Shown: one piece after another, positions 406 through 52,409 of the stretch | How positions within the stretch are numbered: the stretch's first letter is position 1 | How the letters are laid out: the number at the start of each line of letters is the position of its first letter | Assembly: GCF_964204645.1 (NCBI RefSeq) | Contig: NC_134033.1 | Coordinates: 15,694,655 to 15,758,654, forward strand | Length of the DNA: 64,000 bases | Direction of reading: 5' to 3' | Source: Tubulanus polymorphus | Taxonomy: Eukaryota; Animalia; Nemertea | Notes under the pieces: model-generated | The model's input: only the letters and a program-made list of their open reading frames with translations | Databases searched by the model: none | What the model was told of the DNA's origin: nothing | Translations under genes and position numbers: made by a program

Positions 406-3400
406 ATGGCGACTGACGGGTCCTCGGTTGGTGAAGGTACTGTAATTTATATCTCCGAAGCGGACAACGTTTTGAAAGCCGTATCGATTTACGGGAAACG
501 ATGGTTGTACACGACTTACGCGATGTTGTCGGTTTCGACTTGCTCACTGACAGCTTGGCACATGTTCGCAATCGCTTTTATAGGTAAATTCATCCACCAT
601 GGCCGCGCTATATATAAAGATTAGATTGAGGATAAAAATGAAGTTGAATGTATAATCTAGAGAAAATAGATTTTATTTGCGAATATTTCTTTCTCGAATT
701 TTAAAATTCACAAATGAATTTCAACGTATCGTCGCAACAGGTGGACTTCCCGATGACTATCACTGTCGAGTGGGCGCCAATCAATCGATACCTCAGATTT
801 ATAAAGATGGTAAATGGACGAATGATAAATGTCGTATGTACAAGAATGAATCTAGTGGTGATAATCAGACGATACCGTGTAATAATGGATGGGTTTATTA
901 TACCGATTATCAAAGCACCATCGTTACCGAGGTAGGGACATTATCAGTGATCAATAATCTCTCTTGCGTTTGAAATAAACAAATTTACACTTTTCTGCTT
1001 CGGCGAGTGTGGTCACTATACCGCCATCCTCGCTTGCCAGTGTTTGATTGCCTCCAAAACCTGGCAAGCGAGGATGCTATAGGCCAACGCCAACAAACTT
1101 AGCTGCAAAACTTAATTAATTCAAAATCCGCAGAGAAACGATGAAATTATAGCTCCAATTTTTCAGAAGTTTCTGACTTTCTGCTTGCAGTGGGATCTGG
1201 TCTGCGACAGGGACTATTTACCTCAAATGGCGCAGACTATTTTTTTCGTCGGTACTTTGATCGGAGCCGGAAGTCTGTCACCGTTAGCTGATTGGTTGGG
1301 GCGTAAAACGGTCCACATCGGTTCACTGATTGGAATCGCAGTTTTTGGAATTGTAGTGATATTTTCACCTAATTACACGATGTTTGCCGTGATGAGATTT
1401 CTATCTGGAATTTGTCAACAGGTTTGAATTTCATAAATTTCAGGATCCAGTTTAACCCAGTTTTCGGTTAAGAGTTCACTCGACTATAAATTGTGGAGCT
1501 GTGTGCTGGTATAATTTCTCCGTGTTTAACTATAGGTCATCTAAGTTCCTTCTGATAAATGATTCTTTCCTCTATTTGATTATGATTATATCTATTCCAG
1601 GGTATCGCGCTGTCTGGAGGTGTTATGGTTTTTGAATTGTTCCATAAAACGAATAGATACCTATTCTGTCTTGCTTTAACGTTCGCCTGGTCATTTATGG
1701 TCGTGTTGCTGGCAGCGTTCGCCTTCTTAGTTCGAGATTGGAAGCATTTACAACTCCTGATCTCGATTCCGGGATTATTAGCAATTTTCGGTATTTGTTG
1801 TCTTACCGAATCGATACCCTGGCTGATCGGCCGAGGTCGAATCGCCGAGACCGAACAGATTCTACGGAAAGTAACGAACGGTGCCGAGATCAAACTGTCG
1901 GTTCCGGGTGACGGATTTCCGGAAGAAGTGACATCGAATATAAGAAGAAAAAAGAGTTTGAAAACTGACATAACGAAATGGATGAAAACTTTGGGACGAA
2001 AACGTTGCAAACCAAAACGAAATTCTCACACAGTACGTAATTCACACTTACGTGTCCCGTGTTGGTCACAAATTGAAGAAGTCTCAGAACTAAAATTTTG
2101 AACATTTCATCGAATCCGGTGTACACTAATACACTAGCAGAATCCCTGTTGACATAAAATATTTGAAATAGATTAAATGGTTTGAAGTCTATTGCTATAG
2201 ATTACTTTAGTCAAGTTAAGTTGTACATTAAGTAGGATGATATCTATTTGCAGCGTGCGCCCCCTACTGGCAGTGTGGAGGAAAAGCGCGAAACTTTGTT
2301 GGACGTGATGAAACATCCTCGTTTACGTTGGTATTCAATAATCATATGTCTAATGTGGTAAGCAACTAGAAATCTAACCGCTGTTAAACTGTGCTGTGAC
2401 CGAAGAAATGGCCTTACAGCTCAATGGGATGAGGCACGAAGTCGTTGTAATCGGGTTCGAATCCTGCTGGCTGCTTACAGCGCGCGCTTCAACCTCAGAA
2501 GGTGTTGGTCCCGTCGTTAATCTTAGTAAACAACCCAATAGGATTTATCTTGGAAAACCAAGATTTGAACGTAATTTAAATTGTTATATATTAGAGTGTA
2601 TCTTGAACAGGTTGAATTCATCGATTGCTTATTACGGAATTACTTTGAGCGCCACGTCTCTAGTCGGAAACAGATATCTGAATTTCGGTTTGGTCGCGCT
2701 CGCCGAAGCTCCGACTTTCATTTACACAAGTACCATGTCGACAAAGTAGGCAGTGATGATTCTGTAAAAAGTACATTTCATTCTGGATCAAAATACAAAC
2801 AAGTCATAGATTTGTTGATCGCCATTATTTATAGGGCTGGTCGTCGTATTGCATCATCTATTGCCCAGGTTGCTGGAGGAATTGCGCTCATCATTGTGGC
2901 TTTCATACCAAAAACACTTAGTAAGTTTATATTCAACTCGTAAAGTTAATCTGAATATGAGATGTAGAATAGCCGCGTTAACCTGCTGCTGGTATAGCTG
3001 TATTACTTCATAGTTTAACTTGATAAGGGTTTCTGCTGTTTCACAGAAAACCTTATTGATTTCCTCCGGATTATTATCATCATTATTATTATATTCATTT
3101 CTATTATTACTGTTAATATTGTTATGATTATATTATTATTAATCCCTAAAAGTCACTGAAATACCCAAGGCTCCTTAACTACTTGGCGGATATCTACCAA
3201 TTTGATTTAAGATTTTGCTTAACCCCAATACCAACAAATACGAAGAGTCTTGATTTTGATTGACCCCATCGATTCATCTCCAAAAAACTTACAATATACG
3301 CTGAAATCAAGTGAACCTTCACTGTACTATCCGTCATCACGTTTGCTGCTCCGAAAACGTTTGATCCTGATCAATCCCTGATCAATCATAAATCTTGTAT

Positions 3401-4140
3401 AGATCATCGTGACGTCCTGATAACGATCTTATGTGAAATCTTGACGAATGTTTTATGCAATTTATCGAATATTTCTTTACGTAACCATCAAGTAATTCAT
3501 TTCCTTTTTCATTACAGCGGATGGAACGAGTTTTGCGCCATTAATTCTCACTTTTACGATGGTCGGGATGTATTTCATATCGTGCTCATTTACTTTGGCA
3601 TATCTTTACGGCAAGGAAATCTATCCGACAAGTACCAGGTAAAAACGATGCCAACTTCATCGACCGTTCATAAAATTCATGAACGCGGAAAGGTTTCTTA
3701 TTTGGTGATTTCGTTAAAATTCCCTTTTTTCAGAAATAGTGGTATAGGTTTGTCTTCCGTTTGTGCTAGAATTGGAGGAATGTTGGCGCCGTTTGCAGGA
3801 TATATGGTATGTAATATTTGGGGAAAAAACAAGGCCACTTGTCACTGGTAAATTGAGTTTGATTCTTTTATAAGGGTTCTTATTGCTGTTGTAGATGGCA
3901 AAGATTTACTGGTTTCCGGGAGTATTTCTAGGCTCTGTATCTGTAATCATCGGTCTACTGGTATTACACCTTCCTGAACCGCTTGGACGTCCAATACCGC
4001 ATAAAATCGCCGACCTGGATTCCTGGACGCGTCAACGATATCGATCGCCAACAGACGACAACATGGCCGACGAGCAACTTCCGGCGTTACTGGAAGAACA
4101 TGAACTTGAGGAAGATGGTCGAAATAACTTCGTTGTTTAG
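406..4140 (+). CDS. SLC22 family (organic cation transporter-like, MFS) copy 1; 10 exons: 406-583, 741-931, 1191-1421, 1601-2032, 2254-2357, 2611-2745, 2835-2920, 3518-3638, 3734-3806, 3895-4140
   Basis: GT-AG joins keep the frame. Hallmark SLC22 motifs are present: C..GWVY..YQSTIVTEWDLVCDR, LADWLGRK, ESIPWL, EIYPTSTRNSGIG, LPEPLGRP. Confidence 0.93.
1025..1076. repeat. Short hairpin (16-bp perfect inverted repeat CATCCTCGCTTGCCAG); related arms at ~71-95 and ~25210-25233
   Basis: Seen directly. Confidence 0.6.
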
Positions 4141-4487
4141 TCTTGGGTTTTATTCTTTACTCTCAAACCGATTTTTCAATTCACAACTATTAATTCAATT
4201 TATCTTTTATCAAATTTATGACTCAATAATATACATAATTATACCGATAAAATATCTGGTTATTTGATATATATCTTTCGTTGATTGACGGTGAATATCA
4301 GCACTTGCAGAACAAAACCCACTTATCAATTGACACATCAGGTCCACGCTCGTTTTTCATAATCAGTTCGACCTTATTACGTATTATTTATGATCAGTCG
4401 TAACTGTTTTCGTATATCAGGCGCCTGACAGATTTGTAAACGCTCTGGTTAGATATCTTACTATACGGTAAAAGATAACGCCCGGTA

Positions 4488-7400
4488 ATGGCGACTCGAC
4501 TTTCTCAGTCTTCCGTCAGCAGTAACGCGGTTTATATCACCGAAGTAGACACGATTCTGAGAGCCATATCGAACAACGGTAAACGATGGTTGTACACGAC
4601 TTATTTCGCGTTATGCGCGGCTTACTGCTTTCCGTGCGCCTGGCACATGTTCGCGATCACTTTCGTCGGTAAGTGTCGACGTCTTTGAGAAGGTAAACGA
4701 TTTATCTATTAAACGACGATTAAAAGAAAACTTACTAAAACCAATTCGAAAATCTAATCAAAATTTGAATACAGACCTCATAAGGAGCTGTGAGAGCCGT
4801 GTTAACTTGAATGAACTGCGTGTTAACCTTCAGAAGTTTGATCGATTTGTTTAAAACCACACGAACTGTCATTGCATAGCTTCACCAGTAGTTTTTCCGT
4901 TTAGTATTGTGGGTCGGTCCACTTTCCGTTTGGACACGGCTGAAGTGGTCCATCGAGACTATAATCGACTTGAAATAAGGATTTTCCCTCTTAATACTTC
5001 ATTGATAGATTTCCTTTTAATTTGCCTTGATTTGGTGTCCCTTACGAACCCACCGTTACACCTGCCGCGATCGAAACAGTGCAGGTTTCATTTTCAAATC
5101 GGGAATCGAAGTACAGACATAGTTGTGTGGATCGGCAGTCGAATTTACTGAATTATTTCTATCGAATTACATAATTGGAAATTTCGGTTCCGGTTCATTC
5201 AAACTATCATACAAGCAGCCTGAGCCGACAAGCGCCTGATCAGTCCATTATTTCTTTTCACGATGTTTACTCGAAAGTCATCAAACATTTTCTAGATCAT
5301 TGTCGTAAAAATAGTTGTCATTTTTCAAGTCTACTGGAATATTGCCATCAGTTTGCATTTTATTTATAAGCTTACGTATATACAACCATGAACTCTACTC
5401 GAGTCCAAAAAAAAAAACAACTTGAAATACAGTATCGTCACAATCGACGGTTTCCCTCTGTTGAGTGATAAGAATCTAAATATGTTATGATTTTTTTATC
5501 TAATTTTTTTTCAAATCAGGTGGACTGCCCGATGACTATCACTGTCGAGTGGGCGCCAATCAATCGATACCTCAGATTTATAAAGACGGTAAATGGACGA
5601 ATGATAAATGTCGTATGTACAAGAATGAATCTAGTGGTGATAATCAGACGATACCGTGTAATAATGGATGGGTTTATTATACCGATTACCAAAGCACCAT
5701 CGTAACTGAGGTAATTAACATGATCATCGTATCTTAACTTAATTGAAGTCCCCGATACAGTCTCTGGTGATAAAAGGACCCAAGACCCTATGACTTTTTT
5801 AATACTTAATTCAGGAGACCAATAGTTAAAACATTTGAAAGGTCGAGAATGATATCTTGATTTTGAATTTGTGAAAACTTTATAGCATTGATTTCATCGT
5901 GTCTGTGATTTTGAAGAGTTTCCACTGATTGTGGTGAGTCTTGCGACCGTTGGATAAAAATCTGCTAATCCCACAAATTTTATAATGGCTAGTCCTAAAC
6001 CAGTAATAAGCAATTAGCAATTAGCAAATTAGTATGACAAAGGGACTGGATGAGCTGATAAGACCAGTGTAAAAGGTCTCCTCCATTGATATGGCCGAAG
6101 AAACATCATTTTTCACAATTCTTTTTATAACTGTATCTAGAATTTGTTTCTTTTTTTCTGATTGCAGTGGGATCTGGTGTGTGACAGGGACTATCTACCT
6201 CAAATGGCGCAGACTATTTTTGTCGTCGGTACTTTGATCGGAGCCGGGAGTCTGTCGCCGTTAGCCGATTGGTTGGGACGCAAAAAGGTCCACATCGGTT
6301 CACAGATGGCGATGGCGATTGTGGGAATAATAACAATATCTTCTACTAATTACGTCATGTTTGCCGTAATGCGAGTCATAACAGGTGCACTTCAACAGGT
6401 ACGATCGTCCGAACTGGTGCGTGCAGCTTCTGCTGCAAGAAAACCTTTCTGATCAGTTTTAAAATCTGCAATTGCAAATAAATCCCTGTCATTTCTTTGT
6501 TACGTATATATAGGACAAGTTGTATAACCACTGGCCAAGTGGACTGGTTGTAGAAAGCAAGCGTGCTAGCTAACCAGTAGACCAATAGAAGCATAGTCCA
6601 CTTGTCCACAGTGGTTATAGAGCTTATCCTATATTCCCAACATCTTCGTTAGTTTTTCAATCTACCTCTAGTATTTCTTCTTATTTCCAGGGAGTGGTAC
6701 TATCCACTACTGTCCTGTTATTCGAGTTGTTCCCGGCGGAAAAAAGGGCTCATGCTAACTTGAGTACTTGGTTACTTTGGTCGCTCGGTATCATCTCTCT
6801 GGCCACGTTCGGTTACTTCGTACGGAATTGGAAATATCTCCAGTTGCTGATTTCCGTTCCGGCGTTTCTAGACCTAATCGGTATCTGGTTCTTCCCGGAG
6901 TCCATACCGTGGTTGATCGCGCACGGAGAAATCGACGAAGCTCAAAAGACAATCGACAAAGCCGTCGAAAAAGCGAGAGTTAAAATTCCGATTCCCGGTT
7001 CGCTTCTAGATTTGGACGTCCTAGAGAAACCCGGTTTGAGAAAGTCGTCAGATACAGTGCGACACAGTTCAACAGATGATCCGCCGGTATTTAACATTAA
7101 GAAATTTCTTGCTACACACGTCATCACACAAATCATCTTAATAATAGAAATCTGGTTCCACATTTAAAATTACCGGATCCAGATTCAAATAAGACGCTAA
7201 CAACTGTAGGACTGGGTACAAAGTCAAATTAAGTCCACACAACCGTGGAACTGGGTTCACAGTCGAAGTAAACCTTCACAGAACTGAATCCAGAGTCAAA
7301 TTAAAACCACTAAACTCTGGGACTGGGTCTAGAATAAAATACTGAAGAATTTGTTAAAATTTCAGGCACAACCGACTGAAGAAAAGCGCGAAACTTTGTG

Positions 7401-8567
7401 GGACGTGATGAAACATCCTCGTTTACGTTGGTATTCGTTGATCATGTGTCTAATGTGGTAAGTTCTTAAAACTATTCCCCCTAAAGACTTAATCTAATCG
7501 ACTGAAAAACTGGCACTAGAATTATTCCGTCCATCTTTAAAGGTTCAACTCTTCGATGGCTTATTACGGAATTTCACTGAGCGCCACGTCTTTGGTCGGC
7601 AACAGATATTTGAATTTCGGTCTGGTCGGAGTGATGGAAATTCCAAGTTACATATTCACCGTTACAACAGCACCGAGGTGAAATAATCAATCAACAAAAA
7701 AACCTAGTCCTTTTCATTTCTTGTTTTTTTTTCATTCCGCGAAAACGCAATTTTTTCTTGTGTAGAATTGGTCGTCGTATTCCGTCATGTATTTCGCAAG
7801 TAGGTGGTGGAATCGCACTTATTATTGTGCCCTTCATACCAAAAACACTCGGTAAAAGTTTTAGTCACCTTTCTATTCCGCTCATAAAGCAATGAATCCT
7901 TTGAGTTTTCCTTTATCTTTTGTTCTCTGTATCTCCTTTACGCGTAGCTGATGGGACGAGTTTGGCTCCTCTGATTGTTACTGTTACTATGGTCGGCATG
8001 TTTTTCGAGGCATCGGCATTTGCACTGGCATTTCTTTACGGACAAGAGATTTATCCGACCAGCACCAGGTTAACAATTAGTTTCATTGCTAGATGAAGGT
8101 AGCACCAACGAGTTCTTTGTTAAAGAGAATACCTTTATGTGAACATTGTACGTTTCATTTTTCCAGAAATAGTGGTATGGGTTTATCCTCCGTGTGGGCC
8201 AGAATTGGAGGAATGTTGGCGCCGTTTGCGGGATATATGGTATGTAATATTTGAAAAAAAGCATTCGTCACTGGTGTAAAATGTGCCAATTTGTTGATTA
8301 AGTATTTAATTTCTGTTGTAGGTGACTAAGATCTACTGGTTTCCGGGAGTATTTCTAGGCTCTATATCTATAATCATCGGTCTACTGGTATTATACCTTC
8401 CTGAACCGCTTGGACGTCCAATACCGCAGAAAATCGCCGACATGGATTCCTGGACGCGTCAACGATATCGACCGCCAACAGACGACAACATGGCCGACGA
8501 GCAACTTCCGGCGTTACCGGAAGTACAAGAACACGAAGCAGATGGTCGAACTAACTTCGTTATTTAG
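4488..8567 (+). CDS. SLC22-like transporter copy 2 (10 exons; exon 2 5520-5710, exon 4 6691-7086, last exon 8322-8567)
   Basis: Same exon structure and motifs as copy 1 (WDLVCDR, ELFPAEKR, PESIPWL). Confidence 0.92.
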
Positions 8568-9024
8568 TCTAGGCTCCAGTGTCATGTATCGTAGCTCGCA
8601 GCTACCATATCTTACCATCAGCTACCAGTCTGCGTCGTATAGCTGCCAACTACCAACCAGCTGCCAATTCCTCGTTACCCTTTGAGCAATCATTTGACGA
8701 CCATTCCAGTAAAATTGATTGGTCAACAATTTAGAAATAGAAGACGCGACGTTTCGGACACTCATTAAGAAATCATCGTCAGCATCAAAAGAATTTAGTA
8801 TGAAAAGCATATTTAAAAAAAGGAAAAATTGATTCGTTGTTTTGAAAATTATTCAACTAAAAATGAAAAATTCAAAGATTTGTGAAAAAAAGAATTTCAA
8901 TTGTCTGAAGTTTTATACTTTATGCAGTTGAAAAAATTCAACGCTGTGATTTACTTTTACCAATCGTCAACCGGTAAAATACGGATTAACGTTGTATGAA
9001 GGGAATCAATTTTGAAATCGACAG

Positions 9025-9972
9025 TTATTCGACAGAATTTCTACAGCGGATTTTCATACAGAAATATTCACGTATTTCTCGCCCCAGTAAAAGGTATATG
9101 TAGAAATTCACCACGAAATTACAAACCAGGAATTGTGTGAAAATCTCGAGTAGAAATTCTCTCTGTTCCGGTGAGATTGGTAAAAATACAATAATAGTCG
9201 TTGGAAGTGTGAATAGCGCAAATGCGAATGAAACTGTTACGAGCATTATTGTTATACGTTTTGATTTTGTAATTTTCTGATCGGACGAAACCATTTTAGA
9301 ACTTCTGAATAACTGAACTATTATAACAGAATTTGATGTTATGATCAAAGTTAACGGTATGATGTTAAAGTGGATGACAGATATGTAGAAAACTGTTATT
9401 TGGTCGACCAACCGGGCGAAACACCCGGAAATCTGGTCAGTAAAATGCAGCGACAAAGCAGGGCTGAGGTATAGAACTAGTAAATTTACTGCAGTGATTA
9501 TCAATATTGCAAATCTAGCGAATCTCGGTGTACATATCAAACGAGATGAGAACGGGAAAAGTACAATTGCAGCACGTTCTAAAGTTATGGCTACTATAAA
9601 CCACGCACTATTGTTGCTCACAAGTATCATTACAGATTCATAGATTTGACAACTAATCAGCGATTTCATGATGAATATAGGACCGTCTTTAACGTGGAAA
9701 AGAACAAACTGTAAAACAGGTATCAGCGTATAATTGACGCAATAAATAGAGTCACTAAGGGACAAAGCGATCAGATAGTTAGCGTAAGATAAACCGCGGA
9801 ATCTGCGACTTATCATTATCAGGAAAGTAGCCGAATTTCCAAACGTTCCTAACAGGAACACGATATGCAGAATGACCAATGCCACTGTACGGCGGATTCC
9901 AGACTTGTTCACCACCGACATGATGACGATATAACTGTAAGGTCGACTGATTTGCGTCTGAGTTGAATTCAT
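9025..9972 (-). CDS. Intronless rhodopsin-class (class A) GPCR, peptide-receptor-like orphan, 315 aa
   Basis: Seven hydrophobic segments with GN in TM1, LSLSD in TM2, ITLER (DRY-equivalent), FTLP in TM6 and NFVVNFYIY in TM7. Confidence 0.88.
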   Translation of the reverse strand: MNSTQTQISRPYSYIVIMSVVNKSGIRRTVALVILHIVFLLGTFGNSATFLIMISRRFRGLSYANYLIALSLSDSIYCVNYTLIPVLQFVLFHVKDGPIFIMKSLISCQIYESVMILVSNNSAWFIVAITLERAAIVLFPFSSRLICTPRFARFAILIITAVNLLVLYLSPALSLHFTDQISGCFARLVDQITVFYISVIHFNIIPLTLIITSNSVIIVQLFRSSKMVSSDQKITKSKRITIMLVTVSFAFALFTLPTTIIVFLPISPEQREFLLEIFTQFLVCNFVVNFYIYLLLGREIREYFCMKIRCRNSVE

Positions 9973-10384
9973 GATTCATAACAATCAACTGTTGAAGAGA
10001 CTGACTGTATGAATAGACTGACACGAAATAAAGCCATGTCTAATTTATTGGAACGTTTGCAACAAAGAGAAAATGCGTAGAAATCTAACACAATTTACTC
10101 ATATTTTGTTGAAGTTTGTTACTGTGTAAAATTTGTATGTAACTAAATTAAATATCAACATTCGTTGTACAAGAATTCATTGTAAATGATGAAATCGTAG
10201 TGAAATATCTGAACTGGTTGGAAATTGTAAGCGCACGTTCTGAGTGAGGTCAGAACTATATCACAATTCCTATCTATACGTGGGACGCAATCACACCCGA
10301 ACCACCGTGCCGGAGGTCCCGAGTTCGAACCCAGTAAATACGTACACGAATTTCTCGTCCTAGTCAGTGAAAGATATAGTCGAA

Positions 10385-11241
10385 AGTAACCACAGTTTCA
10401 AAACATGGAATTGATCGATTAAGATATTATATAGAAATTCTCTTTGTTCCGGAAAGATTTGTAAAAATGTAGAGATAGTTGATGGAAGATTAAACATAGT
10501 ATAATACATGTATATGCGAGTGTAACTGTTACAGGCGTTTTGATTTTGTAGTGTTCTGATAAACCCATTTTCGAACCTCCGAATAACCGAATTATTATAA
10601 CAGCATTGGATACTGTGATCAAAGATGATGGTATAAATGTAAGGTATACCTGTCGACTATGGTTTAAAGTATCATTTGGTCAGGTGGTTCATGGTAACAT
10701 CCGAAATATTGGTCGGTAAAAAGTACCGAAATACTAGGTGTAGGATATGGAAAAAGTGGATTTACTGAAATATAGAATATAGAATATTTTAGTGCTCACA
10801 AAAGTACTTTTGCTTAGAGCAAAAAGACAATACAAAATGAATGTCAATACAATACAATATCAATACAATATCAGGACAATATCAGAAGCAATGTATTATG
10901 TTGTATTTTGGATAGGTGATAGGTGATAGCCAAGGCTAATATGTATCCAAAATTACACTACACAGTTAATGTGCGACAAAAATAATACAGCAATGTTATT
11001 CAAAATGTATGAGGCCTCTTCGTATAAATAAGGCAAGCTTTCGGAGTTTTACATCTGATGATCTGAATAGGTCTACAAATTTATGTAATTGTGGGTTATC
11101 CACAAAGTACGAGCTAAAAAGGTCTCGACGGAAATTGGCAAAAAACGGACACAAAGAGAAATGTATGTAAAAAACTGCAGTAACTAAGCTATAGCAAATC
11201 TCGGTGTACATGACAAAACGAAATGCGAACGGGAAAAGCAC
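10385..11241 (-). pseudogene. Degenerate paralog (TM4-TM7 region) of the 9025-9972 GPCR, interrupted by a LINE fragment
   Basis: VLFPFAFRF and ITVSNAVIIIRLFGGSKM align to VLFPFSSRL and IITSNSVIIVQLFRSSKM of the intact gene. The copy has frameshifts and lacks the 5' half. Confidence 0.75.
10768..11165 (-). mobile_element. 5'-truncated non-LTR retrotransposon 3' end (CR1/L2-like ORF2 C-terminus plus short-repeat tail)
   Basis: HFSLCPFFANFRRDLFSSYFVDNPQLHKFVDLFRS..KLRKLALFI resembles the C-terminal motif of CR1/L2-group ORF2. It is followed by (TATTG)n and (TTCTATA)n tail-like repeats. Confidence 0.6.
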
Positions 11242-11452
11242 GTTTGATAATCAAACTAATAGTCTACTTGGCCGTTGCGTTTTCTTCAATCGCTGATTGA
11301 TAGTAGATTTCAGCAAGCGGCCACTTATGGGTTGACATGTCAGGTTCACGCACGTTTTTCGTAATCAGTTCGACCTTATTATCTCATGATCACAGTCGTC
11401 GTCTTGTATATCGATCGTGTCGGTGATCCGGCGAGGGTTAGAGATCGCGATA

Positions 11453-14400: not shown

Positions 14401-15131
14401 TAACCTGTCTGTTCAATCCATAAAGCTATAGATCATTTAAAAATCGTATAAACCTTTTCGTTTCCTTTGTGTCTTGTACCGGTAGCTGATGGGACGAGTT
14501 TGGCTCCTCTGATTGTTACTGTTACTATGGTCGGCATGTTTTTCGAGTCATCGGCATTTTCACTGGCATTTCTTTACGGACAAGAGATTTATCCGACCAG
14601 CACCAGGTGTTGTAACAATTTGTTTCATTGCCTAATCGTTACATCCGTTCGTCGATGAAGACAAAAATGCAGCAGCAAAGAGTTATTTGGTCAAAATTAA
14701 AATGTGAACATCGTTTGTTGTTTAATCTTTTTTTCAGAAATAGTGGTATTGGTCTTTCCTCGATGTGGGCGAGGGCTGGAGGAATGTTGGCGCCGTTTGC
14801 GGGATATATGGTATGCAGTATTGGAAAACAAGGCCACTTGTCACTGGTAAATTGTTGACTTTGTTTATACGCGTTTTTATTGCTGTTGTAGGTGACTAAG
14901 ATTTACTGGTTTCCGGGAGTATTTCTAGGCTCTGTATCTATAATCATCGGTCTACTGGTATTGTACCTTCCTGAACCGCTTGGACGTCCAATACCGCAAA
15001 AAATCGCCGACATGGATTCCTGGACGCGTCAACGATATCGACCGCCAACAGACGACAACATGGCCGACGAGCAACTTCCGGCGTTACCGGAAGTGCAAGA
15101 AAATGATGTTCGAAGTAACTTCGATATTTAG
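11453..15131 (+). CDS. SLC22-like transporter copy 3 (exon 2 12276-12466; 75-nt intron 3 12888-12962)
   Basis: Same exons and motifs. Exon 1 and introns 5-6 are nearly identical to copy 2. Confidence 0.92.
13628..13880. repeat. ~39-bp tandem repeat (GGAACTGGATCCAGAGTCAAATAAAACTCACACAACTGT), ~6.5 copies; more degenerate orthologous array at 7170-7335
   Basis: Seen directly; the unit resembles one arm of the 38007 MITE family. Confidence 0.8.
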
Positions 15132-15795: not shown

Positions 15796-18700
15796 ATGGC
15801 GGCTCGTGAGTCTTTCTCATCCGTTGGAAGTACCGTAATTTACATCTCCGAAGTGGACAATATTCTGAGGGCCGTATCAATTTACGGTAAACGATGGTTG
15901 TATACAATTTACGTGGCATTATGTGTGGCTTTCTGCTTCCCAGCGGGATGGCACATGTTCGCGATCACTTTCGTGGGTAAGTTACAGGCACCAGAGTCCC
16001 AGTTGTGCAGTCATGACTAAAATCCAAAGGTTGCCTTAAATGTGAAGACTGGTCTTAAGTTGTTAAGTTTGGTTATAGAACTAAAATCAGGTTAGACTGG
16101 TCTTAAGTTGTTAGATTGGCCATGGAACCAAAATGAGCTTGGACTGGTCTTTAGTTGTTGGATTGGCTATAGAACCAAAATTAGGTTAAACTGGTCTTCA
16201 GCTGTTAGATTGGATCCATAACTGAGGTGGTCTAAGGTTGGTCTCTAATCTAAGCTGTGACTGTGCAACTGGCCCCAGGGACTAGATCTAATCTTTTAAC
16301 AGACTCGCATTTAATCATCTATTCGAAGAAAACCTCCGATTCAGTTAAATGATTATGTCATTTATTCAAGTTTCTTTCCTCCAAATGTAATCGAATGTCA
16401 ACATGTCAATACGCCACGCATAGTTTACAATACTCTCAAGTGAAATCTATCAGCAAATCTTTTATCTGAAAACAAATAAATATCTTTCCAAAATAAGAAG
16501 GGCAAGGTTCTGTTATAGATTTTTTTAGACATCGAATCGATAAGATACAAACTATTTGACTATCAGTTTATGAAATTTAGTTTTGAATTGAAAAGAATAC
16601 CGATAATTATTCAGATTTGATAAAATCATGATTCGGGATTATATGAATTTTCTATTTCGCAAATGAATTCCAACGTATCGTCGCTACAGGTGGACTGCCC
16701 GATGACTATCACTGTCGAGTGGGCGCCAATCAATCGATACCTCAGATTTATAAAGATGGTAAATGGACGAATGATAAATGTCGTATGTACAAGAATGAAT
16801 CTAGTGGTGATAATCAGACGATACCGTGTAATAATGGATGGGTTTATTATACCGATTATCAAAGCACCATCGTTACACAGGTATAATGTAATTATTGTCA
16901 TTAATCACTTAAATTTTCTAAGTATTTAAAATGATAAAGTGAAGTTATAATGTCTTTGTTTCTGCAGGTTTTTGAATTTTAAAAGTATGTTTAATATTAT
17001 TCTGTTATCCGGTCATGCACTCGATGCCCGAATGTTTGATAATGGCTACTTAAAACCTGTTGCCGTATGATGCTTGTATGACAACCGGACTCGATGAGCT
17101 CACCAAAACTAGACTCTGAGGTCTCATCTATTCAGATAATGCCAGTCGAAAAACGATATTTTGCAAAAAAGATAATTGTTTAATGCTGCTTGGATCGGCG
17201 TTTCTAGAATTTAACAAATTTTAAAGGAAGTTACGAAATATCATCGTTTCTGCTCTTCATAGAGAAACTTTGTATTCTATTATCGTGGCATGTCCGGTCA
17301 GTTTATTTTACACTCAATGTGCCCGATAGCCTTCGGCGGATATGTCCGAAGGTTTAATAATGACCTCTTCTAAACCTGTCGCCTACGACCATTGTATGAC
17401 GGAGGGGCTCAATGAGCTTATTGAACTAGTCTCCTAGGTCTCCTCCATTCATATCAAACTGGACAAAGAAACGACATTTTCCACAATCCAAATAAGATTT
17501 CTAACTTTCTGTTTGCAGTGGGATCTGGTCTGTGACAGGGACTATCTACCTCAAATGGCGCAAACTATTTTTGTCGTCGGTACTTTGATCGGAGCCGGGA
17601 GTCTGTCGCCGTTAGCCGATTGGTTGGGACGTAAAAAGGTCCACATCGGTTCGCAGATGGCGATGGCGATTGTGGGAATAATAACAATATCTTCTCCTAA
17701 TTACGTCATGTTTGCCGTAATGCGAGTAATAACAGGTGCACTTCAACAGGTACGATCTGGCGCAGCTGCTGAAAACGAAGATTGCTTCATCACAAATACA
17801 TCCGTTAAGTCAAAGATATCATTAACTGGTAAAATTCCCTTTTGAGAAACTTAGCTCGTTTTTCAAAAAACAGAATCCCAACACCGATGGATAATCTACG
17901 ACAGTACATTATAGAAATGCTGAATAACTTTTGACATTTCTACCCTATATACGAACGGGTTTTCCGTATTTCTTGAAATTAATTTTGTGAATTAGATTAA
18001 TGTTTCGCCTTTCCAGGGAGTGGTCCTATCCAGTACTGTTCTGTTATTCGAGTTGTTCCCGACTGAAATGAGGACTGTCTCCACTCTCAGTACCTCCATA
18101 TTCTGGGCGATGGCTGTCGTCATACTGGCCACATTCGGTTACTTCGTACGGGATTGGAGATATCTCCAGTTGCTTATATCCATTCCGGCGTTTTTGGACC
18201 TACTCGGTATCTGGTTCTTCCCGGAGTCCATACCGTGGCTGATCGCGCACGGCAAAACCGACGAGGCCGAAAAGGTCATCGCAACGGCGGTGAAAGGCGC
18301 GAAGATCAAAATCCCGATTCACGAGATGGAATTCCCGGAGCGACCCAGTTTGAGGCGATCGAGTCTGGAATTGATGAATAAATCGATGACGCAAATGCGT
18401 AATTTGAAAAGAAGGTTGTCAGATCGGCGACGCAGTTCAACACAGACACCACCGGTATATACAAGAACAACCCCCAGCGCCCAGTAACGGGTGAATTCCG
18501 ATAGAGATTATCCATGGATGAAAACTAACCTCAACGACTTGGATACTATGAATGTTTAACTTTTCATCTCTGGATAGTATTTTATCAACCCAATTTGAGT
18601 AGACATTCTTAACCCTACAGTGTCAAATCCTGACTATTTGACCGTAAGAAGGCACATTTCGTTCATTCTAAATTACAGAGATTTTCGCATTTCTAGGCAC

Positions 18701-20136
18701 CTGACCCCGAAGAAAAGCGCGAAACTTTATTGGACGTGATGAAACATCCTCGTCTACGCTGGTATTCATTGATCATGTGTCTAATGTGGTAAGTCTTTAG
18801 ACTTCTAACAATCATGAGTTATTGGGTTCGAGTCCATCAATTTGCGCCATATAATATCTTTGTTACAGGTTAAATGCGTCAATGTCTTATTACGGAATTT
18901 CACTGAGCGCCACGTCTTTGGTCGGCAACAGATATTTGAATTTCGGTTTGGTCGGAGTTACGGAAATCCCTAGTTACATATTTACTCTCATAGTATCGAC
19001 CAAGTAAGACTTTTTAAAACCATAAGAGTCTATCTATTCCAGTATACAGGGTGGTCCAAAAAGCGCAACCTCATACTACCACTTATCAGAGGCCTTCAAT
19101 TTTCATACAGATCGATCGGAAATTTTGTTCGAAAAGACACAATAACTCTCAATTTTTTCGAGCTATTTTGGTTCCAGGGCCAATGTTGTGAACCGATCAG
19201 CGCCTCAAACCAGCTCAATTTCTAATGTCTAACAAACAGATAATCGTAGCGGAATCCAAATCTACAGTTTACTGGTCAGCACCCTTGCGTTATATGTACA
19301 TACCACACTTGGATTCGATTCCCGGTGAGTGCGCGTAATTTGCTGCATTTCTTTAAATCTTGTGTTCTATTTTTGTAGATTTGGGCGCCGTATTCCTTCA
19401 TGCTGTGTCCAAGTTGCTGGTGGAATCGCACTCATTGTTGTAGCTTTCATACCAAAAACACTATGTAATATTGACATCTCTTTTAGCTACATTTTGTTTC
19501 GGTGTTCGAGTCAATGTATAAACATTTTATATCGTAGCTGATGGGACTAGTTTGGCTCCTCTGATTGTTACTGTTACTATGATCGGCATGTTGTTCGAGT
19601 CATCGGCTTTTTCACTGGCATTTCTTTACGGACAAGAGATTTATCCGACCAGCACCAGGTTATTATACACAAATGCATCACCAAGAGCTCTTTGTAAAGA
19701 ATATGTGCATAATCAATTGTTCATTTTTCAGGAATAGTGGTATGGGTTTGTCCTCTGTGTGTGCTAGAATTGGAGGAATGTTGGCGCCGTTTGCGGGATA
19801 TATGGTTTGTAACATTTGCAAGACAAGTAATTTGAATTATTGAAAAACAAGTATTTTGTTACTGGTTACTTTATTAGGCTTTTATTGCTGTTGTAGATGG
19901 CAAAGATCTACTGGTTTCCGGGAGTATTTCTAGGCTCTGTATCTATAATCATCGGTCTACTGGTATTATACCTTCCTGAACCGCTTGGACGTCCAATACC
20001 CCAGAAAATCGCCGACATGGAGTCATGGACGCGTCAACGATATCGACCGCCAACAGACGACAACATGGCCGTCGAGAAACTTCCGGCGTTACCGGAAGTA
20101 CAAGAAAATTATGATCGAAATAACATCGATATTTAG
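15796..20136 (+). CDS. SLC22-like transporter copy 4 (exon 2 16690-16880)
   Basis: All 10 exons are recognisable with canonical splice sites. Confidence 0.92.
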
Positions 20137-20762: not shown

Positions 20763-23700
20763 ATGGCGGCTCGTGAATCTTTCTCATCCGTTGGAAGTAC
20801 CGTAATTTACATCTCGGACGTGGACGATATTTTGAAGGCCGTATCAATTTACGGTAAACGATGGTTGTATACGACTTATGTCGCATTAAGTATAGCTTCT
20901 TGCTTTCCAACGGGATGGCACATGTTCGCAATTACTTTCGTGGGTAAGTTACAGGCACCAGGGGCTAGTTGTGCAATCTTTTTAAAAGTGATCTTGAATG
21001 TTAAGGTTTTAAGTTGTAAGATTAGGTATAGAACCGAAGTGAGTTTAGACTGGTCTTAAGTTGTAAGATTGGTTATAGAACCAGAATGGGCTTAGACGGG
21101 TCTCAAGTTGTTAGATTGGTTATAAAACCAGAATGAGCTTGGACTGGTCTTAAGTTGTTTGGCTATAGAAATAAAATGGGTTTAGACTGGTTATTGATCG
21201 TGCAAGTGTTGCTCTTGGTAATAGATGGCACCAAGGATCAAATCTAGTTCATAACTGAGTCACTTTTTAGTACGTGCACAATTTTCTATTTTATAGTTAA
21301 ATGATTGTGTCATTTCTACAAGTTTCGTTCATCATAATTTAACTGAATGAAAATATATCAGATATATCACATAAAGTTCACGATACCGAGTGGAATCGAT
21401 CAGCAAATCTTTTATCTAAACGCAAATACAAAATCCAACTATTTATCTTTAGCAAAATAATAAGGGCAAAGTTTCACTAGTGCCGTAGTATTTTTCACGA
21501 TCAAAAAGATTAGATTATTTTCTTATCGCAAGGTGGACTGCCCGATGACTATCACTGTCGAGTGGGCGCCAATCAATCGATACCTCAGATTTATAAAGAT
21601 GGTAAATGGACGAATGATAAATGTCGTATGTACAAGAATGAATCTAGTGGTGATAATCAGACGATACCGTGTAATAATGGATGGGTTTATTATACCGATT
21701 ATCAAAGCACCATCGTTACTGAGGTAGTGTAAACATTTCAGTGATCACTCTTAATTGAAATATGATATCTTACTTGGCGTTTCATTGGTCAAGTTAGATT
21801 TTGAAGTATCATATTGACAAAAGGAAGTTACAAAATATCATCGTTCCTGGTCTTGTTTGAGTAACTTTGTATTCTATTATCGTGGCATGTCCGGTCAGTT
21901 GATCATGTACTCAATGTGCCCGATAGCCTTTGGCGGATATGTCCGAACGTTTAATAATGACCACTTCTAAACCTGTCACCTATGACTATTGTATGACGGA
22001 GGGGCTCAATGAGCTTATTGAACTAGTCTCATAGGTCTCCTCCATTCATATGAAACTGGACAAAGAAACGACATTTTCCACAATCCAAATAGAATTTCTA
22101 ACTTTCTGATTGCAGTGGGATCTGGTGTGTGACAGGGACTATTTACCTCAAATGGCGCAGACTATTTTTGTCGTCGGTACTTTGATCGGAGCCGGAAGTC
22201 TGTCGCCATTAGCTGATTGGTTGGGACGCAAAACTGTCCACATCGGTTCGCAGATGGCGATGGCGATTGTGGGAATTATAACAATATTTTCTCCTAATTA
22301 CGTCATGTTTGCCGTAATGCGAGTAATAACAGGTGCACTTCAACAGGTACGATGTCGCAGCTGCTGCAAAAGTTGATAGCTTCATCAGAAATTTCCGTTA
22401 TATATCCAATCCGTCAAGTGTAAGATATAATCTATTGGTAGAATCCAAATTTGACACACAAATATTAAGCAATTTTTAAAAAACTAGAATCCCAACGAAC
22501 GATTACACACAAAATTACTAAATAGCTTGTGTCCATTTCCTACTTGCTTGGAAATAGTTTTCTTAAATTCGAAAGTATTGATTCATGTTTTCCATTTCCA
22601 GGGAGTGGTCCTATCCACTAGCGTCCTGTTATTCGAGTTGTTCCCGGCTGAAAAGAGAGCTCTCTGTACCCTTAGTATTTCCATATTCTGGGCGATGTCT
22701 CTCGTCATACTGGCCACGTTCGGTTACTTCGTACGGAATTGGAGATATTTCCAGTTGTTGATTTCAATTCCGTCGTTTATCGACCTACTCGGTATCTGGT
22801 GCTTCCCGGAGTCCATAGCCTGGCTGATAGGGCGTGGAAAATTCGACGAAGCTGAAAGAACTATTGAAACGGCGGTGAAAGGCGCGAAGATTAAAATCCC
22901 GATCTCCGCTTCCCTTCTCAAGATGGCGGTCCCGGAACGACCCAGTTTGAGACGATCGAGTTCGGAGATGAGTGATTTGAAAAGAAGGTCGTCAGATCCA
23001 CGACGCAGTTCAACACAGGCTCCACCGGTATATACCAGACCAACCCCCAGCATCCATTTCAACAGTTCTGAGATTAAATAGTGGAATTTAGTTACAACGA
23101 ACTTCAAGGCAGCAAAATCTGTTAGTTCGTTATAACTGATAATTCTGTAAACAGTATGAAATTATTGAATGTCTTATTTGGGACGAAAGATAGGTTTGTC
23201 ACAGGTCAGTCGATAAATCGTTGTTACCCGAGGTCGTTATAACGAGTATCAAAACGTAACATTTGAAAAGACATTCTTACGTGGCAAATCTTGACCATTT
23301 AACCGTGAAACAAGTTTTTTATCTGCTATCCTAAGTTATATAGGAATTTTCAGGAACCTGACTTCGAAGAAAAGCGCGAAACTTTGTTGGACGTGATGAA
23401 ACATCCTCGTTTACGTTGGTATTCATTGATCATGTGTCTAATGTGGTAAGTCTTTAGACTTCTAATAATCATGACTTATTGGGTTCGAGTCCATAAATTT
23501 GCGCCATATAATATCTTTTTTACAGGTTTAATGTGTCAATGGCCTATTACGGAATTTCACTGAGCGCCACGTCTTTGGTCGGCAACAGATATTTGAATTT
23601 CGGTTTGGTCGGAGTTACGGAAATTCCCAGTTACTTACTCACTCTCCTTGTAACAACCAAGTAAGACGTTAAGAATCCTTATATTCTATCTATTCCAGTA

Positions 23701-24689
23701 TATATAACTGGAAAGAATATATTTTACAAATACGATAAGCTGTACATAACCACTCACTAGTACTACGTAAGACTATAGTTTTATTGGTTCACTGGTTACC
23801 ACCCTCTACGACACTTAGGTTCGATTCCCGATGAGTGCGCGTAATTTGCCGCATTTCTTTAAATCTTTTGTTCTAATTTTGTAGATTTGGGCGCCGTATT
23901 CCTTCATGCTGTGTCCAAGTTGCTGGTGGAATCGCACTCATTGTTGTAGCTTTCATACCAAAAACACTATGTAAGATTGATATCTCTTTTAGTACCATTT
24001 TTTCGATAAATGTCAATAATTGTATAAACATTTTATATCGTAGCTGATGGAACGAGTTTGGCTCCTCTTATTGTTACTGTTACTATGGTCGGCATGTTGT
24101 TCGAGTCATCGGCTTTTTCACTAGCATTTCTTTACGGACAAGAGATTTATCCGACCAGCACCAGGTTGTTGTTATACATAATAGCTCGCGTCACATCGTC
24201 AAACCCCTCCCCTCCAGAGATGTAGACACATATACTATAGGAACTCTTTGTAAAGAATAATATGTAGATAGTCAAATGTTCCCTTTTCCAGGAATAGTGG
24301 TATGGGTTTGTCCTCCGTGTGTGCTAGAATTGGAGGAATGTTGGCGCCGTTTGCGGGATATATGGTGTGTAATATTTGAAAGACAAGCAACTTGCAATAT
24401 TGAAAAAAAAAGTTATAGTGCTGGTTCATTTATAAGGTTTTTATTGCTGTTGTAGATGACAAAAATCTATTGGTTTCCGGGAGTATTTCTAGGCTCTGTA
24501 TCTATAATCATCGGTCTACTGGTATTATACCTTCCTGAACCGCTTGGACGTCCAATACCGCAGAAAATCGCCGACATGGATTCCTGGACGCGTCAACGAT
24601 ATCGACCGCCAACAGACGACAACATGGCCGACGAGCAACTTCCGGCATTACCGGAAGGGCAAGAACAATACGATGAGGAAGACTTGTAA
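20763..24689 (+). CDS. SLC22-like transporter copy 5 (exon 2 21533-21723)
   Basis: All 10 exons are recognisable. The upstream region and several introns are shared with copy 4. Confidence 0.92.
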
Positions 24690-25933
24690 GATAACGTAAT
24701 CAAACTCGCTCGATTACCTTTGTATATTTCGCGCTAAGATTTTGAATATATTTATCTGTAAATAAGGATTATTAATATTGGAAATGAAAAATAAACTATA
24801 TTCACGATGATTTCTTCAACATTTTTTTCTTCTCAGAACACTTAATTAACTAGTTTAAACGTGTTTGATTTCTTGGCGCGTTGACGGCACTTCAAATCAA
24901 GTGTTATTTCTGAAAATATGTCGAGTAACATTCCGCGTCCGGTTCCTACGTATAAACTTCTGCCTTTGTTCACTCAATTCACACGTGAACTTGACACGTC
25001 GTAATTTATCGATTTAGTAAATCAACACACATATGTTAGCTACAATCGGAACCCAGGGACTGCCCAAAAGTTGATAATTCACATGACAATCATCAGCACT
25101 TCGGTCATTCATCTTTGGCCATTCATTGAATTTGAAAAAGATGAGGATGCATGGGTTATAATTGAATCTGAGAAGAATTCTGGTGACGTCGTTGTACGTG
25201 CAGAAGCACACCTGGTGGATCCTCACTTGCCAAAGTCGACCCCGGAGTCTGAATTCACTCCGAAAATCCAAATTGATGTTGATACTCAGTTTACGTTCTG
25301 TTCGCGCCAGGCCGAACTAAAGATAGCGAATATTACACGCTCCATTGCTTCTTACCTCAATAGACATATTCAAAACATTACGATATCCGTCATAAGTCAT
25401 AAGTTACAAGTTATCAGTCGGCTTGAAAACCTAATAGCCGGCTAGGATAAATATTTACCTACATTTCGGATGATGATTCCAACATCTGCGGCATAGGTGC
25501 TTCTATTTTTTCTAAATGTCAAATATTTTTATTTCCTCGGCGAGGAGTTTGTGTGTGTACAACTCGACCCATATCCCCAGTTTCAGGCGATCTAGGGTCG
25601 ATGGGGCTTCGGGAAATAACCGATTGACTGAGTTTATAATCTCTTACACCGAGCAATTAGCAGCTCTTCGCGGGTCTAACTCGGCGAACTTAGGCAAATA
25701 ATCCGCCGAAACGAGTAACCCGAACTCGATGAGAGATGAGAGATGGGTAGCGCTTCTGTTGTCTATGCGTAACATAAGGAGTTATGATAAATAAAAACTA
25801 TACTGCGCTCCAATTTATGATGATAACACATGTAGAGTATTGTGCTACGTAGCAGTCAGTCATTTAGTAAGTTAGTCGAGTATTTTGCGGAGGTTTTAAC
25901 CGCGAGTTCAAACGTGGCCGGGCAGTATTCGCG

Positions 25934-28900
25934 ATGGCAGCTCGTGGTTCCATTTCATCAGTGGGTAACCCTGTAATCTATATCGCCGAAGTCGACAACA
26001 TCCTGAAAGCGATTTCAAACTACGGGAAAAAATGGCTGTACACGACTTATTTGATATTAGGGATATCTTCGGGATTTCCGACCGCTTGGCACATGTTTGC
26101 CATCTCGTTTGTTGGTAAGTAAATTTATCGCTTTCCGAATCTTTGAACCATTGGTGCACAGGCTGGAATAGCTAGTCGTATTTACAAAATTCGAGTGAAT
26201 CTGTCAACGTAAAGCAAAGTGAATATAATTGAAAATGTCGTCGTGAAAGTTAACGAATTTTAGTGAAATTGAAAATAGAAAATTTAAATCAGAATTCAAT
26301 GAATTTGATAAATTTTTTCTTTTCATCATGTACGGCTCTTTTTGAATAAGAGTGTGTATTCGAATTAGAAAATTTTTATTATCATGTAGATTTTTCATTT
26401 TTTCAAAAATCGTCTTTTTATGTATAACAGACGGATCCCATTGTGGTTTCATTTTGATAAATCGTGTCGTGCAAAATTCGATTGACTGTGGGACTTCTTC
26501 ATTCATCTGGTATTTTTTATATTGAATTGGAAAAATTGAATCTACTTTCTTATCGCAAGGTGGACTGCCCGATGACTATCACTGTCGAGTGGGCGCCAAT
26601 CAATCGATACCTCAGATTTATAAAGATGGTAAATGGACGAATGATAAATGTCGTATGTACAAGAATGAATCTAGTGGTGATAATCAGACGATACCGTGTA
26701 ATAATGGATGGGTTTATTATACCGATTATCAAAGCACCATCGTTACCGAGGTAGGGGAAACATTATCAGTGATCACTCTTAATTGAAATATGATATCTTA
26801 CTTAGCATTCCATCGGTAAAGTTAGATTTTGAAGTACCACAATGACGAAGTTATAAGATCACCGAAGTTAATACTGTAGACTTCAATTAAGTCTGATCTT
26901 TTGGGACTGTAAAAATGTGCCCGGATTGAGTGATATCCGAGTTGGAATTATGTATTTCGCTTATTGTGTCACAGAAATATCTAACAAATATATCTGAGTT
27001 TATCGGATCTTTGGCCGAGTCTATCATCGTTTCTGCAGTTTCAACAAAAGTTTGAATTATATTATTGTGGCGTGTCCGGTCAGTTGATCATGCACTCAAT
27101 GTGCCCGATAGCCTTTAGCGGATATGTCCGACGGTTTATTAATGACCACTTCTAAACCAGTTGCCTATGACCATTGTATGACTAAGAGACTTGATGAGCT
27201 GACCGAACTAGTCTCATAGGTCTCCTCTATTTATATGGAACCTGTCGAAGAAACAACGTTTTCAAAATTAAAATAAGATTTTTAAATTTCTGATTGCAGT
27301 GGGATCTGGTCTGCGACAGGGACTATTTACCTCAAATGTCGCAAACTATTTTTGTCGTCGGTACTTTGATCGGAGCCGGAAGTCTGTCGCCGTTAGCCGA
27401 TTGGTTGGGGCGTAAAAAGGTTCACATCGGTTCACAGATAGCGATGGCAGTCGTCGGAATCGTCACCATGTTTTCGCCTAATTACGCCATGTACGCCGTG
27501 ATGAGATTCCTGTCCGGCGCGCTGCAACAGGTTCGAGTAAAACTATCAAGAAAAAAAAACGGAAATTAGTATTTCATAAATGATTTCCGATGCTAACACG
27601 GCATGATGAGCACAGGTGTACACGAGCAACGAAGCATTCATTGCTATCTACATTCATTAGCATACTTATGCGTTTTGTATATCATATTTCATACTACAGT
27701 GTTGTACATATATTTCTAGGGAGTTGTTTTGTCAGCCAGCGTACAGATTTTCGAACTGTTCCCCGCCAGTACTAGAACTGTATTTTCGCTGATGGTTCAA
27801 TTCTACTGGGCGGTCGGCGTCATCTTTCTCGCCGTGTTCGCGTTTTTTGTTCGGGATTGGAGATATCTGCAACTGGTCATTTCTATCCCGGCGTTTTTGG
27901 TCCTGCTCGGTATCTGGTTCTTCCCGGAGTCCGTACCGTGGCTGATCGCGCACGGCAAAACCGACGAGGCCGAAAAGGTCATCGAAAAGGCGGTGAAAGG
28001 CACGAAGATCAAAATCCCGATTCCCGGTTCGCTTTTGGAGATGGAGGTCCCGGAGCGACCCAGTTTGAGGCGGTTGAGTTTGGAACTGAAAAATAAATCG
28101 GTGACGCAAATGCGCAATTTGAAAAGAAGGTTGTCAGATCCGCGACGCAGTTCAACACAGGCTCCACCGGTACATACCAGAACAACCCCCGATACCCAAT
28201 TAAACTGTTCGTAATGAAAATCTTAAGTGAAAACACTTGATTCGGTTCCATAGTTTTGGGTTAATTGATTCACTGTTAAAAAATTGAAGATGACCGAATT
28301 ATATCTCCAACTCACATTGTGGAACTGGGTCCTGACATTGAACTGATTTTAACTTCAACTCAAAGCTTTGAAAAATCTTAGTCTTGGAACCAGTTCCACA
28401 GTTCTGAGTTAAATATGACTCTAGAATTAAAACATTGAAAATGAACTAACTTTAACCCAGAGTTAGCTCTAACTCACAGTGGAACCGGGTCCAGGATATC
28501 AATTATTTTTAATTTTGACGTGCCAATCTATCTAATAATGAAACGTACATTTTAGGCCCCGCCCCCTGAGGAAAAAGCGGAAACTTTATTGGACGTGATA
28601 AAACATCCTCGTTTACGTTGGTATTCATTGATTATGTGCTTGATGTGGTAGGTTCAATCGTTCGTTCGTTCGTTCGTATTGTCCAGCTATAAAGTATTCT
28701 TCATATTTTCAATCATGAATTAAAGGTTAAATTCATCGATGGCTTACTATGGAATCTCGTTGAGCGCGACGACCCTGGTCGGCAACAGATACCTGAATTT
28801 CGGTTTGGTCGGAGTCGTGGAAATTCCAGCTTACTGCTTCACAATCGCCGCGGCCACTAAGTAATCATTTCAATGCACGCATCATTTACGTTTATGCAAC

Positions 28901-52365: not shown

Positions 52366-52409
52366 ACACCCGAGAAGCTCCGATCAGTAAACCCTGGCAT
52401 AAATAGGAA

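Follow-up and report, generated by a model that had tools for sequence, protein, structure and literature searches.

A tandem array of SLC22 transporter genes in the nemertean Tubulanus polymorphus has most likely been shaped by short-tract interlocus gene conversion acting on two old subfamilies. Part of the array lies in the window analysed here, a stretch of 64,000 nucleotides (nt) of contig NC_134033.1 (positions 15,694,655 to 15,758,654, forward strand). The 40 kb upstream of the window were also taken, and positions there carry negative numbers. The array consists of ten head-to-tail units on one chromosome and spans about 57 kb (window -23728 to 32927); six units (g1 to g6) are inside the window, and four (A, B, C and D) immediately precede it. 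Subfamily I comprises A, B, C and g1, plus the chimeric unit D, and subfamily II comprises g2-g6.

The strongest sign of homogenisation is exon 2. An earlier note, made from the letters of the window alone, had described this exon as nearly identical among six paralogs, synonymous sites included, with the identity collapsing at the splice sites for most pairs. The six exon 2 positions that it gave (Table 1) are all exact, each exon being 191 nt long and bounded by AG and GT, and both descriptions hold across the complete array. Only 9 of the 191 sites are variable among the ten copies. In 23 of 45 pairs the high identity breaks off no more than 3 nt from the acceptor, and in 31 of 45 no more than 4 nt from the donor; the remaining pairs, recent duplicates C, D and g1 aside, have 11-85 nt of intron in common beside exon 2. 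Variants of exon 2 found in no other copy are carried by C, by g2, by g3, by g4, and by D and g1 jointly. When exon 2 DNA was searched against the whole genome, ten copies came back at 97-100% identity, every one inside the single array, and a six-frame search gave ten matches at 97-100%, the next reaching at most 53%. The count of six paralogs is therefore correct for the window and too low for the array, which the genome search puts at ten units.

Silent divergence between the two subfamilies is far from uniform along the gene, as the earlier reading implied. With pS defined as the proportion of synonymous differences between subfamilies I and II, exons 1-5 give values of 0.60, 0.06, 0.35, 0.74 and 0.44 and exons 6-10 values of 0.57, 0.50, 0.72, 0.29 and 0.10, a change of more than 10-fold between adjacent exons. 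For the pair g1-g3, synonymous differences number 2 of 37 in exon 2, and the diverged exons together have 171 of 268 (Fisher P = 3e-12); the corresponding value for the 5' part of exon 10 (exon 10a) is 6e-16. Polymorphic sites make up 5% of exon 2 and 66% of exon 4. This silent identity, confined to blocks, is far beyond chance.

Compared between the subfamilies, introns 1-8 are no more similar than shuffled controls, so the split between I and II is old at neutral sites; intron 9 alone stands out from the shuffles (0.84 vs 0.69). Trees of exon 1, of exon 4 with the 3' part of exon 3 (exon 3b+4), of exons 6+7 and of exon 8 all place subfamily I apart from subfamily II with 99-100% support, and in the exon 3b+4 tree the two branches joining the subfamilies sum to about 0.69 substitutions per site. 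The trees of exon 2 with the 5' part of exon 3 (exon 2+3a) and of exon 9+10a are star-like, with branches of about 0.01-0.04 and the subfamilies mixed.

Homogenisation reaches beyond exon 2. The 5' part of exon 3 and most of exon 10, which had been likened to exon 2, show mean identities of 0.94 over the first ~126 nt and 0.97 over the first ~195 nt, respectively. As described, divergence is strong in exons 1 and 4 and at the 3' end of exon 6 (identity 0.58-0.72), and the four peptides quoted for transmembrane segments (TM) 4 and 5 are present in g1, g2, g4 and g6. In a ten-codon sliding window along mRNA coordinates, low divergence is seen in a block made of exon 2 and the first ~42 codons of exon 3, in a weaker block formed by the 3' part of exon 5 and the 5' part of exon 6, and in a third formed by the 3' part of exon 9 and the first ~65 codons of exon 10. 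Exon 8 is homogenised within one subfamily only. The claim that homogenisation is restricted to exons is accurate for the edges of exon 2 in most pairs and fails at the 3' block, which takes in intron 9.

Within the diverged segments, pairwise ratios of nonsynonymous to synonymous divergence (dN/dS) are 0.15-0.55 in the TM4-5 part of exon 4 and rise to 0.96 in the cytoplasmic loop. Most segments and pairs have a ratio below 1, clearly so for the pocket-lining part, and where a few ratios elsewhere exceed 1 they depend on 1-4 synonymous differences. Pairwise dN/dS gives no signal of positive selection in the specificity-determining part.

The sequences that flank exon 2 group the copies in conflicting ways. 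Upstream, A, B, C, D and g1 have about 35 nt in common with g4, a member of subfamily II; g3 matches this group over 14 nt, and another stretch of 14 nt is common to g5 and g6. On the downstream side, A resembles g2 and g3, B resembles g5, and g6 resembles C, D and g1 until it turns to the g5 sequence after 22 nt. Inside the blocks, the four-gamete test is failed by 2 site pairs of exon 2, by 21 of exon 3a and by 7 of exon 10a. When polymorphic sites were permuted in a GENECONV-like test, many pair-specific tracts emerged at P <= 0.0005, the permutation floor, among them exons 5-7 for g2-g3, exon 8 for g2-g6 and g3-g6, exon 4 for g4-g6, exons 9-10 for A-g4 and exons 2-3 for g1-g6. Although A and g4 are about 39 kb apart and belong to different subfamilies, they are identical through exon 9 and the inspected stretches of intron 9.

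Intron sequence is part of what has been exchanged. Between subfamilies I and II, identity is 77-92% over the last 20 nt of intron 2, 83-98% over the last 20 nt of intron 9 and 50-87% over the first 30 nt of intron 9, and in many pairs the converted tracts extend 14-45 nt into the intron. Since tracts include intron sequence and none of the units has lost an intron, the template is best understood as genomic DNA. Taken together, the block-limited silent identity, the conflicting flanks, the four-gamete failures and the pair-specific tracts support the proposal of the earlier note that gene conversion has kept the constant exons alike.

Gene models were assembled from splice sites and reading frame for all ten units. 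Nine of the ten are intact genes with ten exons, GT-AG introns and 583-598 codons. The models of C and g6 agree residue for residue with the RefSeq proteins P0043 and P0002, and no independent contigs encoding P0002 or P0043 are on record. RefSeq annotates the array proteins (XP_0746574xx) as SLC22 member 15/20/21-like or as organic cation transporter-like. Unit D is without exon 4; its exons 1-3 are g1-like and its exons 5-10 C-like, and RefSeq represents it as two partial proteins (P0042 and P0041). D arose at the junction of a direct tandem duplication of 5212 bp (27 mismatches and no gaps, 99.48% identity) that spans intron 4 of C to the last base of g1 intron 3 (window -8825..1600), and C, D and g1 are 96-99% identical across kilobases. 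Either unequal crossing-over took place here recently or the duplication is false. Judged by this duplication behind chimera D, recombination is active at the locus.

The assignment of these genes to SLC22, made at first from the letters alone, is confirmed by Pfam matches and by best solved structures that are all SLC22, with E values down to 3.5e-60. Full-length searches ran with the database proteins P0043 and P0002, and exon 2 was searched separately. PF00083 (Sugar_tr) matches P0002 (g6) at 5.9e-31 and P0043 (C) at 3.5e-24, and PF07690 (MFS_1) matches at about 1e-21. The leading structures are OCTN2 (3.5e-60), OCT3 (5.4e-56) and OAT1 (3e-55), followed by URAT1, OCT1 and OCT2, with alignments that span TM2-6 and TM7-12. 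Exon 2 encodes the extracellular loop between TM1 and TM2, of about 63-64 residues with three Cys. The loop-to-TM2 signature, which defines the SLC22 family, aligns with OCTN2 and OCT3 and is split between exons 2 and 3. The array proteins resemble vertebrate SLC22 members (OCT1-3, OCTN1/2, OAT1, URAT1) in fold, in the large TM1-TM2 loop and in the exon 2/3 signature; unlike in those members, the loop is short, at about 64 residues, and has an exon of its own.

To locate the substrate pocket, C was aligned to OCT3 with HMMER, using residues from the OCT3 ligand site (PMC9640557). Six of the nine mapped positions vary among the paralogs (those aligned to W223, Y227, Q247, I254, E451 and Y454) and three are invariant; the position aligned to Q247 holds T, W, S or Q in different copies. 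This pattern fits paralogs with differing predicted substrate pockets. The TM11 position aligned to OCT3 D478 (505 of P0043) is Arg in all nine proteins, unlike OCT3 and like the aligned OCTN2, and the Asp in TM11 of an OCT1-3-type pocket is lacking from every one of them. The array proteins are probably not classical OCT-type cation carriers, and the alignment suggests carriers of zwitterion or anion type. The earlier note had pictured pocket-lining exons that diversify into a repertoire. Positions aligned to the OCT3 pocket do differ between paralogs; diversifying selection finds no support in the dN/dS of the TM4-5 part given above. A role of the array in handling toxins or xenobiotics is a guess.

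We propose the following course of events. The copies would have split long ago into subfamilies I and II, with most exons and introns 1-8 now saturated at neutral sites. Non-allelic homologous recombination, repaired from a genomic paralog, would repeatedly overwrite a few blocks in all copies: exon 2, which encodes the loop; a block that begins about 20 nt before the end of intron 2 and covers the initial ~126 nt of exon 3 (the loop end and TM2); and a block of exon 9, intron 9 and the initial ~195 nt of exon 10 (TM11-TM12). Weaker blocks, or ones limited to a subfamily, would lie in exons 5-6 and in exon 8. Flanking introns without remaining homology would block heteroduplex extension. Tract ends would cluster at the splice sites, or a few tens of bases from them, because the introns have lost homology, and that loss would give exon 2 its sharp edges without any exon-aware mechanism. 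Exons 1, 4, the 3' part of 6, and 8 (OCT3-pocket-aligned positions) may escape conversion through too much divergence, through selection against converted variants, or through both. This would yield transporters that share the loop and the C-terminal scaffold and differ in their pockets.

Several points weigh against this proposal. The signature of GC-biased conversion that is present in mammalian and fish examples (PMC2720389, PMC1852091) is missing, as GC content at third codon positions (GC3) does not rise in the blocks: it is 0.365 in exon 2 and 0.445 in the pooled blocks against 0.476 elsewhere. Raised GC3 is a frequent accompaniment of conversion rather than a strict requirement. With 191 bp, exon 2 is a short homology island for efficient recombination. 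Values of dN/dS below 1 in the variable exons give no support to selection against conversion there. All results come from one genome assembly of T. polymorphus, 268 Mb in size, and in a full-length search outside this genome the nearest relatives were 36-38% identical, none exceeding 38%.

Built-in constraint does not explain the uniformity of exon 2. Against SLC22 proteins from outside the array (from another chromosome of the same genome, the JGI/Logan protein P0049, Lineus and Saccoglossus), the exon 2 protein is 43-50% identical and the other exons are about equal. In a pair of SLC22 genes on another chromosome of this genome (C5:10068001-10102000), exon 2 is the least conserved of four compared exons, with 78% nucleotide identity, and exon 4 stands at 96%. 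In a triple of the same genome (C11:11456001-11486000), exon 2 reaches 93-96% amid a generally higher level, and exon 3 is 97.5% identical for one pair and 76-77% for the other two. Searched against 1.8 billion representatives, exon 2 matched only the species' own proteins at 100%; the next match was one fragment of 106 residues, 66% identical, from another assembly. A search for additional copies of that fragment came back empty, as did a literature search on its assembly accession. As a separate observation, the C5 and C11 SLC22 arrays are also mosaic, in exons other than those of the main array.

These comparisons bear on nucleotide-level selection on the mRNA, under which a shared small-RNA target, a splicing code or a translational element would have held the blocks invariant since duplication without any exchange. 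Such selection would account for exon 2 edges that coincide with splice sites in most pairs, as for a conserved mature RNA, and for GC3 that is not raised. We nevertheless regard it as very unlikely: exon 2 is unconserved in SLC22 genes of this genome outside the array, intron 9 lies within the 3' block, and conflicting intron flanks and four-gamete failures are not produced by selection alone. An RNA element in exon 2 was considered and rejected, as the exon folds worse than shuffled sequences (z = +1.5) and nothing in the array matches an Rfam family. Contiguity of the blocks over the 2/3, 5/6 and 9/10 junctions in mRNA coordinates would also suit a cDNA- or mRNA-templated process, an option raised by the earlier note, in which the spliced transcript of one paralog repairs another. 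The intron content of the tracts disfavours it and makes it highly improbable: g4 has 30-45 nt of intron 1 in common with subfamily I, g6 matches C, D and g1 over 22 nt of intron 2, the 20-30 nt of intron beside exons 3 and 10 are 77-98% identical between I and II, the 3' tract spans intron 9, which is alignable throughout, and every copy has kept all its introns.

C, D and g1, with 96-99% identity over kilobases, are young parts of the array, and one reading extends this to the whole: the blocks would reflect the array's true age, and the variable exons and introns would have diverged unusually fast. That would need introns 1-8 at background and pS of 0.6-0.74 beside exon bases that differ by 2%; with dN/dS below 1 in the variable exons and segment topologies that conflict, there is very little to be said for a young array. 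Least probable of all is an assembly or polishing artefact, in which reads mapped to the wrong paralog and made the consensus uniform wherever copies are identical over a short distance. The 5.2-kb duplicate of D and g1, at 99.5%, could indeed be a false duplication. Polishing is nevertheless unable to raise identity from about 60-70% to 98% over 191 nt with splice-exact edges in ten copies; the private exon 2 variants (C, g2, g3, g4, and D and g1 together, counted as five of ten copies), the unique flanks of all copies, the intact frames of all nine full genes and the recurrence of the pattern in three separate blocks likewise stand against it.

It is unlikely, though less so than these alternatives, that selection keeps the loop and the C-terminal blocks uniform, either for a common partner or for mutual assembly through the extracellular loop. 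The idea stems from a passage of PMC9640557, citing earlier work, according to which oligomerisation and trafficking of OCT1 and OCT2 depend on an intact extracellular domain. If it is true, conversion would carry every change at the common interface into all members of the repertoire simultaneously, with the pocket exons protected.

Block-wise concerted evolution in tandem families is already well described, and the interlocus conversion proposed here is no new mechanism. In the protocadherin clusters of fugu, zebrafish and human (PMC1852091, with Noonan et al. 2004 as cited there), the 3' part of each variable exon is >99% identical and EC1-3 diverge. Like the SLC22 array, these clusters are made of tandem paralogs in which one part is >97-99% identical, silent sites included, and the specificity part has diverged, and repeated short-tract conversion is invoked for both. 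The protocadherin mosaic, however, lies within one large variable exon and shows raised GC3, whereas the array consists of ten-exon genes with tract ends at or near splice sites and no rise in GC3.

The mammalian gene pairs BMP8A/B, DDX19A/B and TUBG1/2 keep conserved mosaic boundaries (PMC2720389) and, like the array, have lasting homogenised stretches beside diverging ones in the same genes; that study puts forward the same idea, in which likeness is maintained in structural or binding regions and the rest diverges. In those pairs whole introns are converted too, a feature by which PMC2720389 selected its cases, whereas the array has ten copies and its tracts at exon 2 and the 5' part of exon 3 include only a few tens of intron bases. 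In the GOT1 paralogs of Tigriopus, PMC3728101 reports diverged islands under conversion, with theory in PMC3924837, and such islands are read as selected for different function, as the diverged parts of the array may be. The proportions are reversed in the array, which is mostly diverged and has its homogenised parts as the islands.

We found no report in the literature of block-wise concerted evolution or gene conversion for SLC22 or for nemerteans. What sets the array apart is its ten intact copies, its homology islands of about 150-200 bp and its lack of a GC3 signature. It offers a clean natural example of conversion and divergence partitioning a multi-exon family, in which tract ends can be read per base in the intron flanks, and it may serve as a model for the smallest homology island (~150-200 bp) that sustains conversion in a spiralian genome. 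The copies are also natural chimeras for mapping the SLC22 segments that set substrate choice. For phylogenies of SLC22 and of other arrayed families the case is a warning, as a tree built on exons 2, 3a and 10 would falsely suggest a 'recent expansion'.

Table 1. Coordinates of the genes and of homogenised and diverged segments in the window (position 1 is the first letter of the window).
Feature	Position	Strand	Remarks
g1, subfamily I	406-4140	+	10 exons, 598 aa; first 400 aa = RefSeq P0001
g2, subfamily II	4488-8567	+	10 exons, 583 aa
g3, subfamily II	11453-15131	+	10 exons, 589 aa
g4, subfamily II	15796-20136	+	10 exons, 595 aa
g5, subfamily II	20763-24689	+	10 exons, 589 aa
g6, subfamily II	25934-32927	+	10 exons, 597 aa; intron 7 = 3057 nt; = RefSeq P0002, XP_074657470.1
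Exon 2 of g1	741-931	+	homogenised block (extracellular loop)
Exon 2 of g2	5520-5710	+	
Exon 2 of g3	12276-12466	+	
Exon 2 of g4	16690-16880	+	30-45 nt of upstream intron in common with subfamily I copies
Exon 2 of g5	21533-21723	+	
Exon 2 of g6	26560-26750	+	downstream intron: 22 nt like C, D and g1, thereafter like g5
Last 20 nt of intron 2 and first 126 nt of exon 3, g1	1171-1316	+	homogenised
First 126 nt of exon 3, equivalents in g2-g6	6168-6293, 12657-12782, 17519-17644, 22116-22241, 27300-27425	+	
Exon 9, intron 9 and first 195 nt of exon 10, g1	3734-4089	+	3' homogenised block
3' block, equivalents in g2-g6	8167-8516, 14738-15086, 19732-20091, 24292-24650, 32325-32888	+	
Exon 4 of g1	1601-2032	+	TM4-TM6 and start of cytoplasmic loop; most diverged exon
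Exon 4, equivalents in g2-g6	6691-7086, 12963-13382, 18017-18454, 22602-23027, 27720-28169	+	
Exon 1 of g1	406-583	+	N-terminus and TM1; diverged
Exon 1, equivalents in g2-g6	4488-4668, 11453-11633, 15796-15976, 20763-20943, 25934-26114	+	

Fragments of the array genes occur outside the ten units. An inverted, diverged partial copy of the 3' end of g6 (52097-52700, minus strand, 75-87% identity) holds a piece of intron 7 and then jumps to the middle of exon 10 and the 3' flank; its 60-nt piece of exon 10 is 92-93% identical to exon 10 of g1-g5. Near window -27783, upstream of unit A, there is a further piece of exon 10. In g6, the final three exons are bracketed by direct repeats (30098-30490 and 33346-33736, 93% identity), both of which carry a self-complementary element of about 165 nt that recurs at 61823-61989. 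The element may be an insertion resembling a miniature inverted-repeat transposable element, which would help explain the 3-kb intron 7 of g6. Intron 4 of g3 contains a 78-nt tandem repeat in about 3 copies with 92-93% identity (13628-13882).

Between g2 and g3 lies an intronless open reading frame of 315 codons (9025-9972, minus strand), which, judged by eye, looks like a seven-helix rhodopsin-type receptor. A degenerate partial copy with 71% identity is found about 1.3 kb away (10345-10634). Further along the window, a direct repeat of at least 630 nt with 98.3% identity occupies 54723-55352 and 63372-64000, 8.6 kb apart, and runs past the window end. Two long tandem arrays were also noted, one at 36229-37784 with a 42/84-nt period and about 96% identity, the other at 43343-44033 with a period of about 80 nt and about 93% identity.

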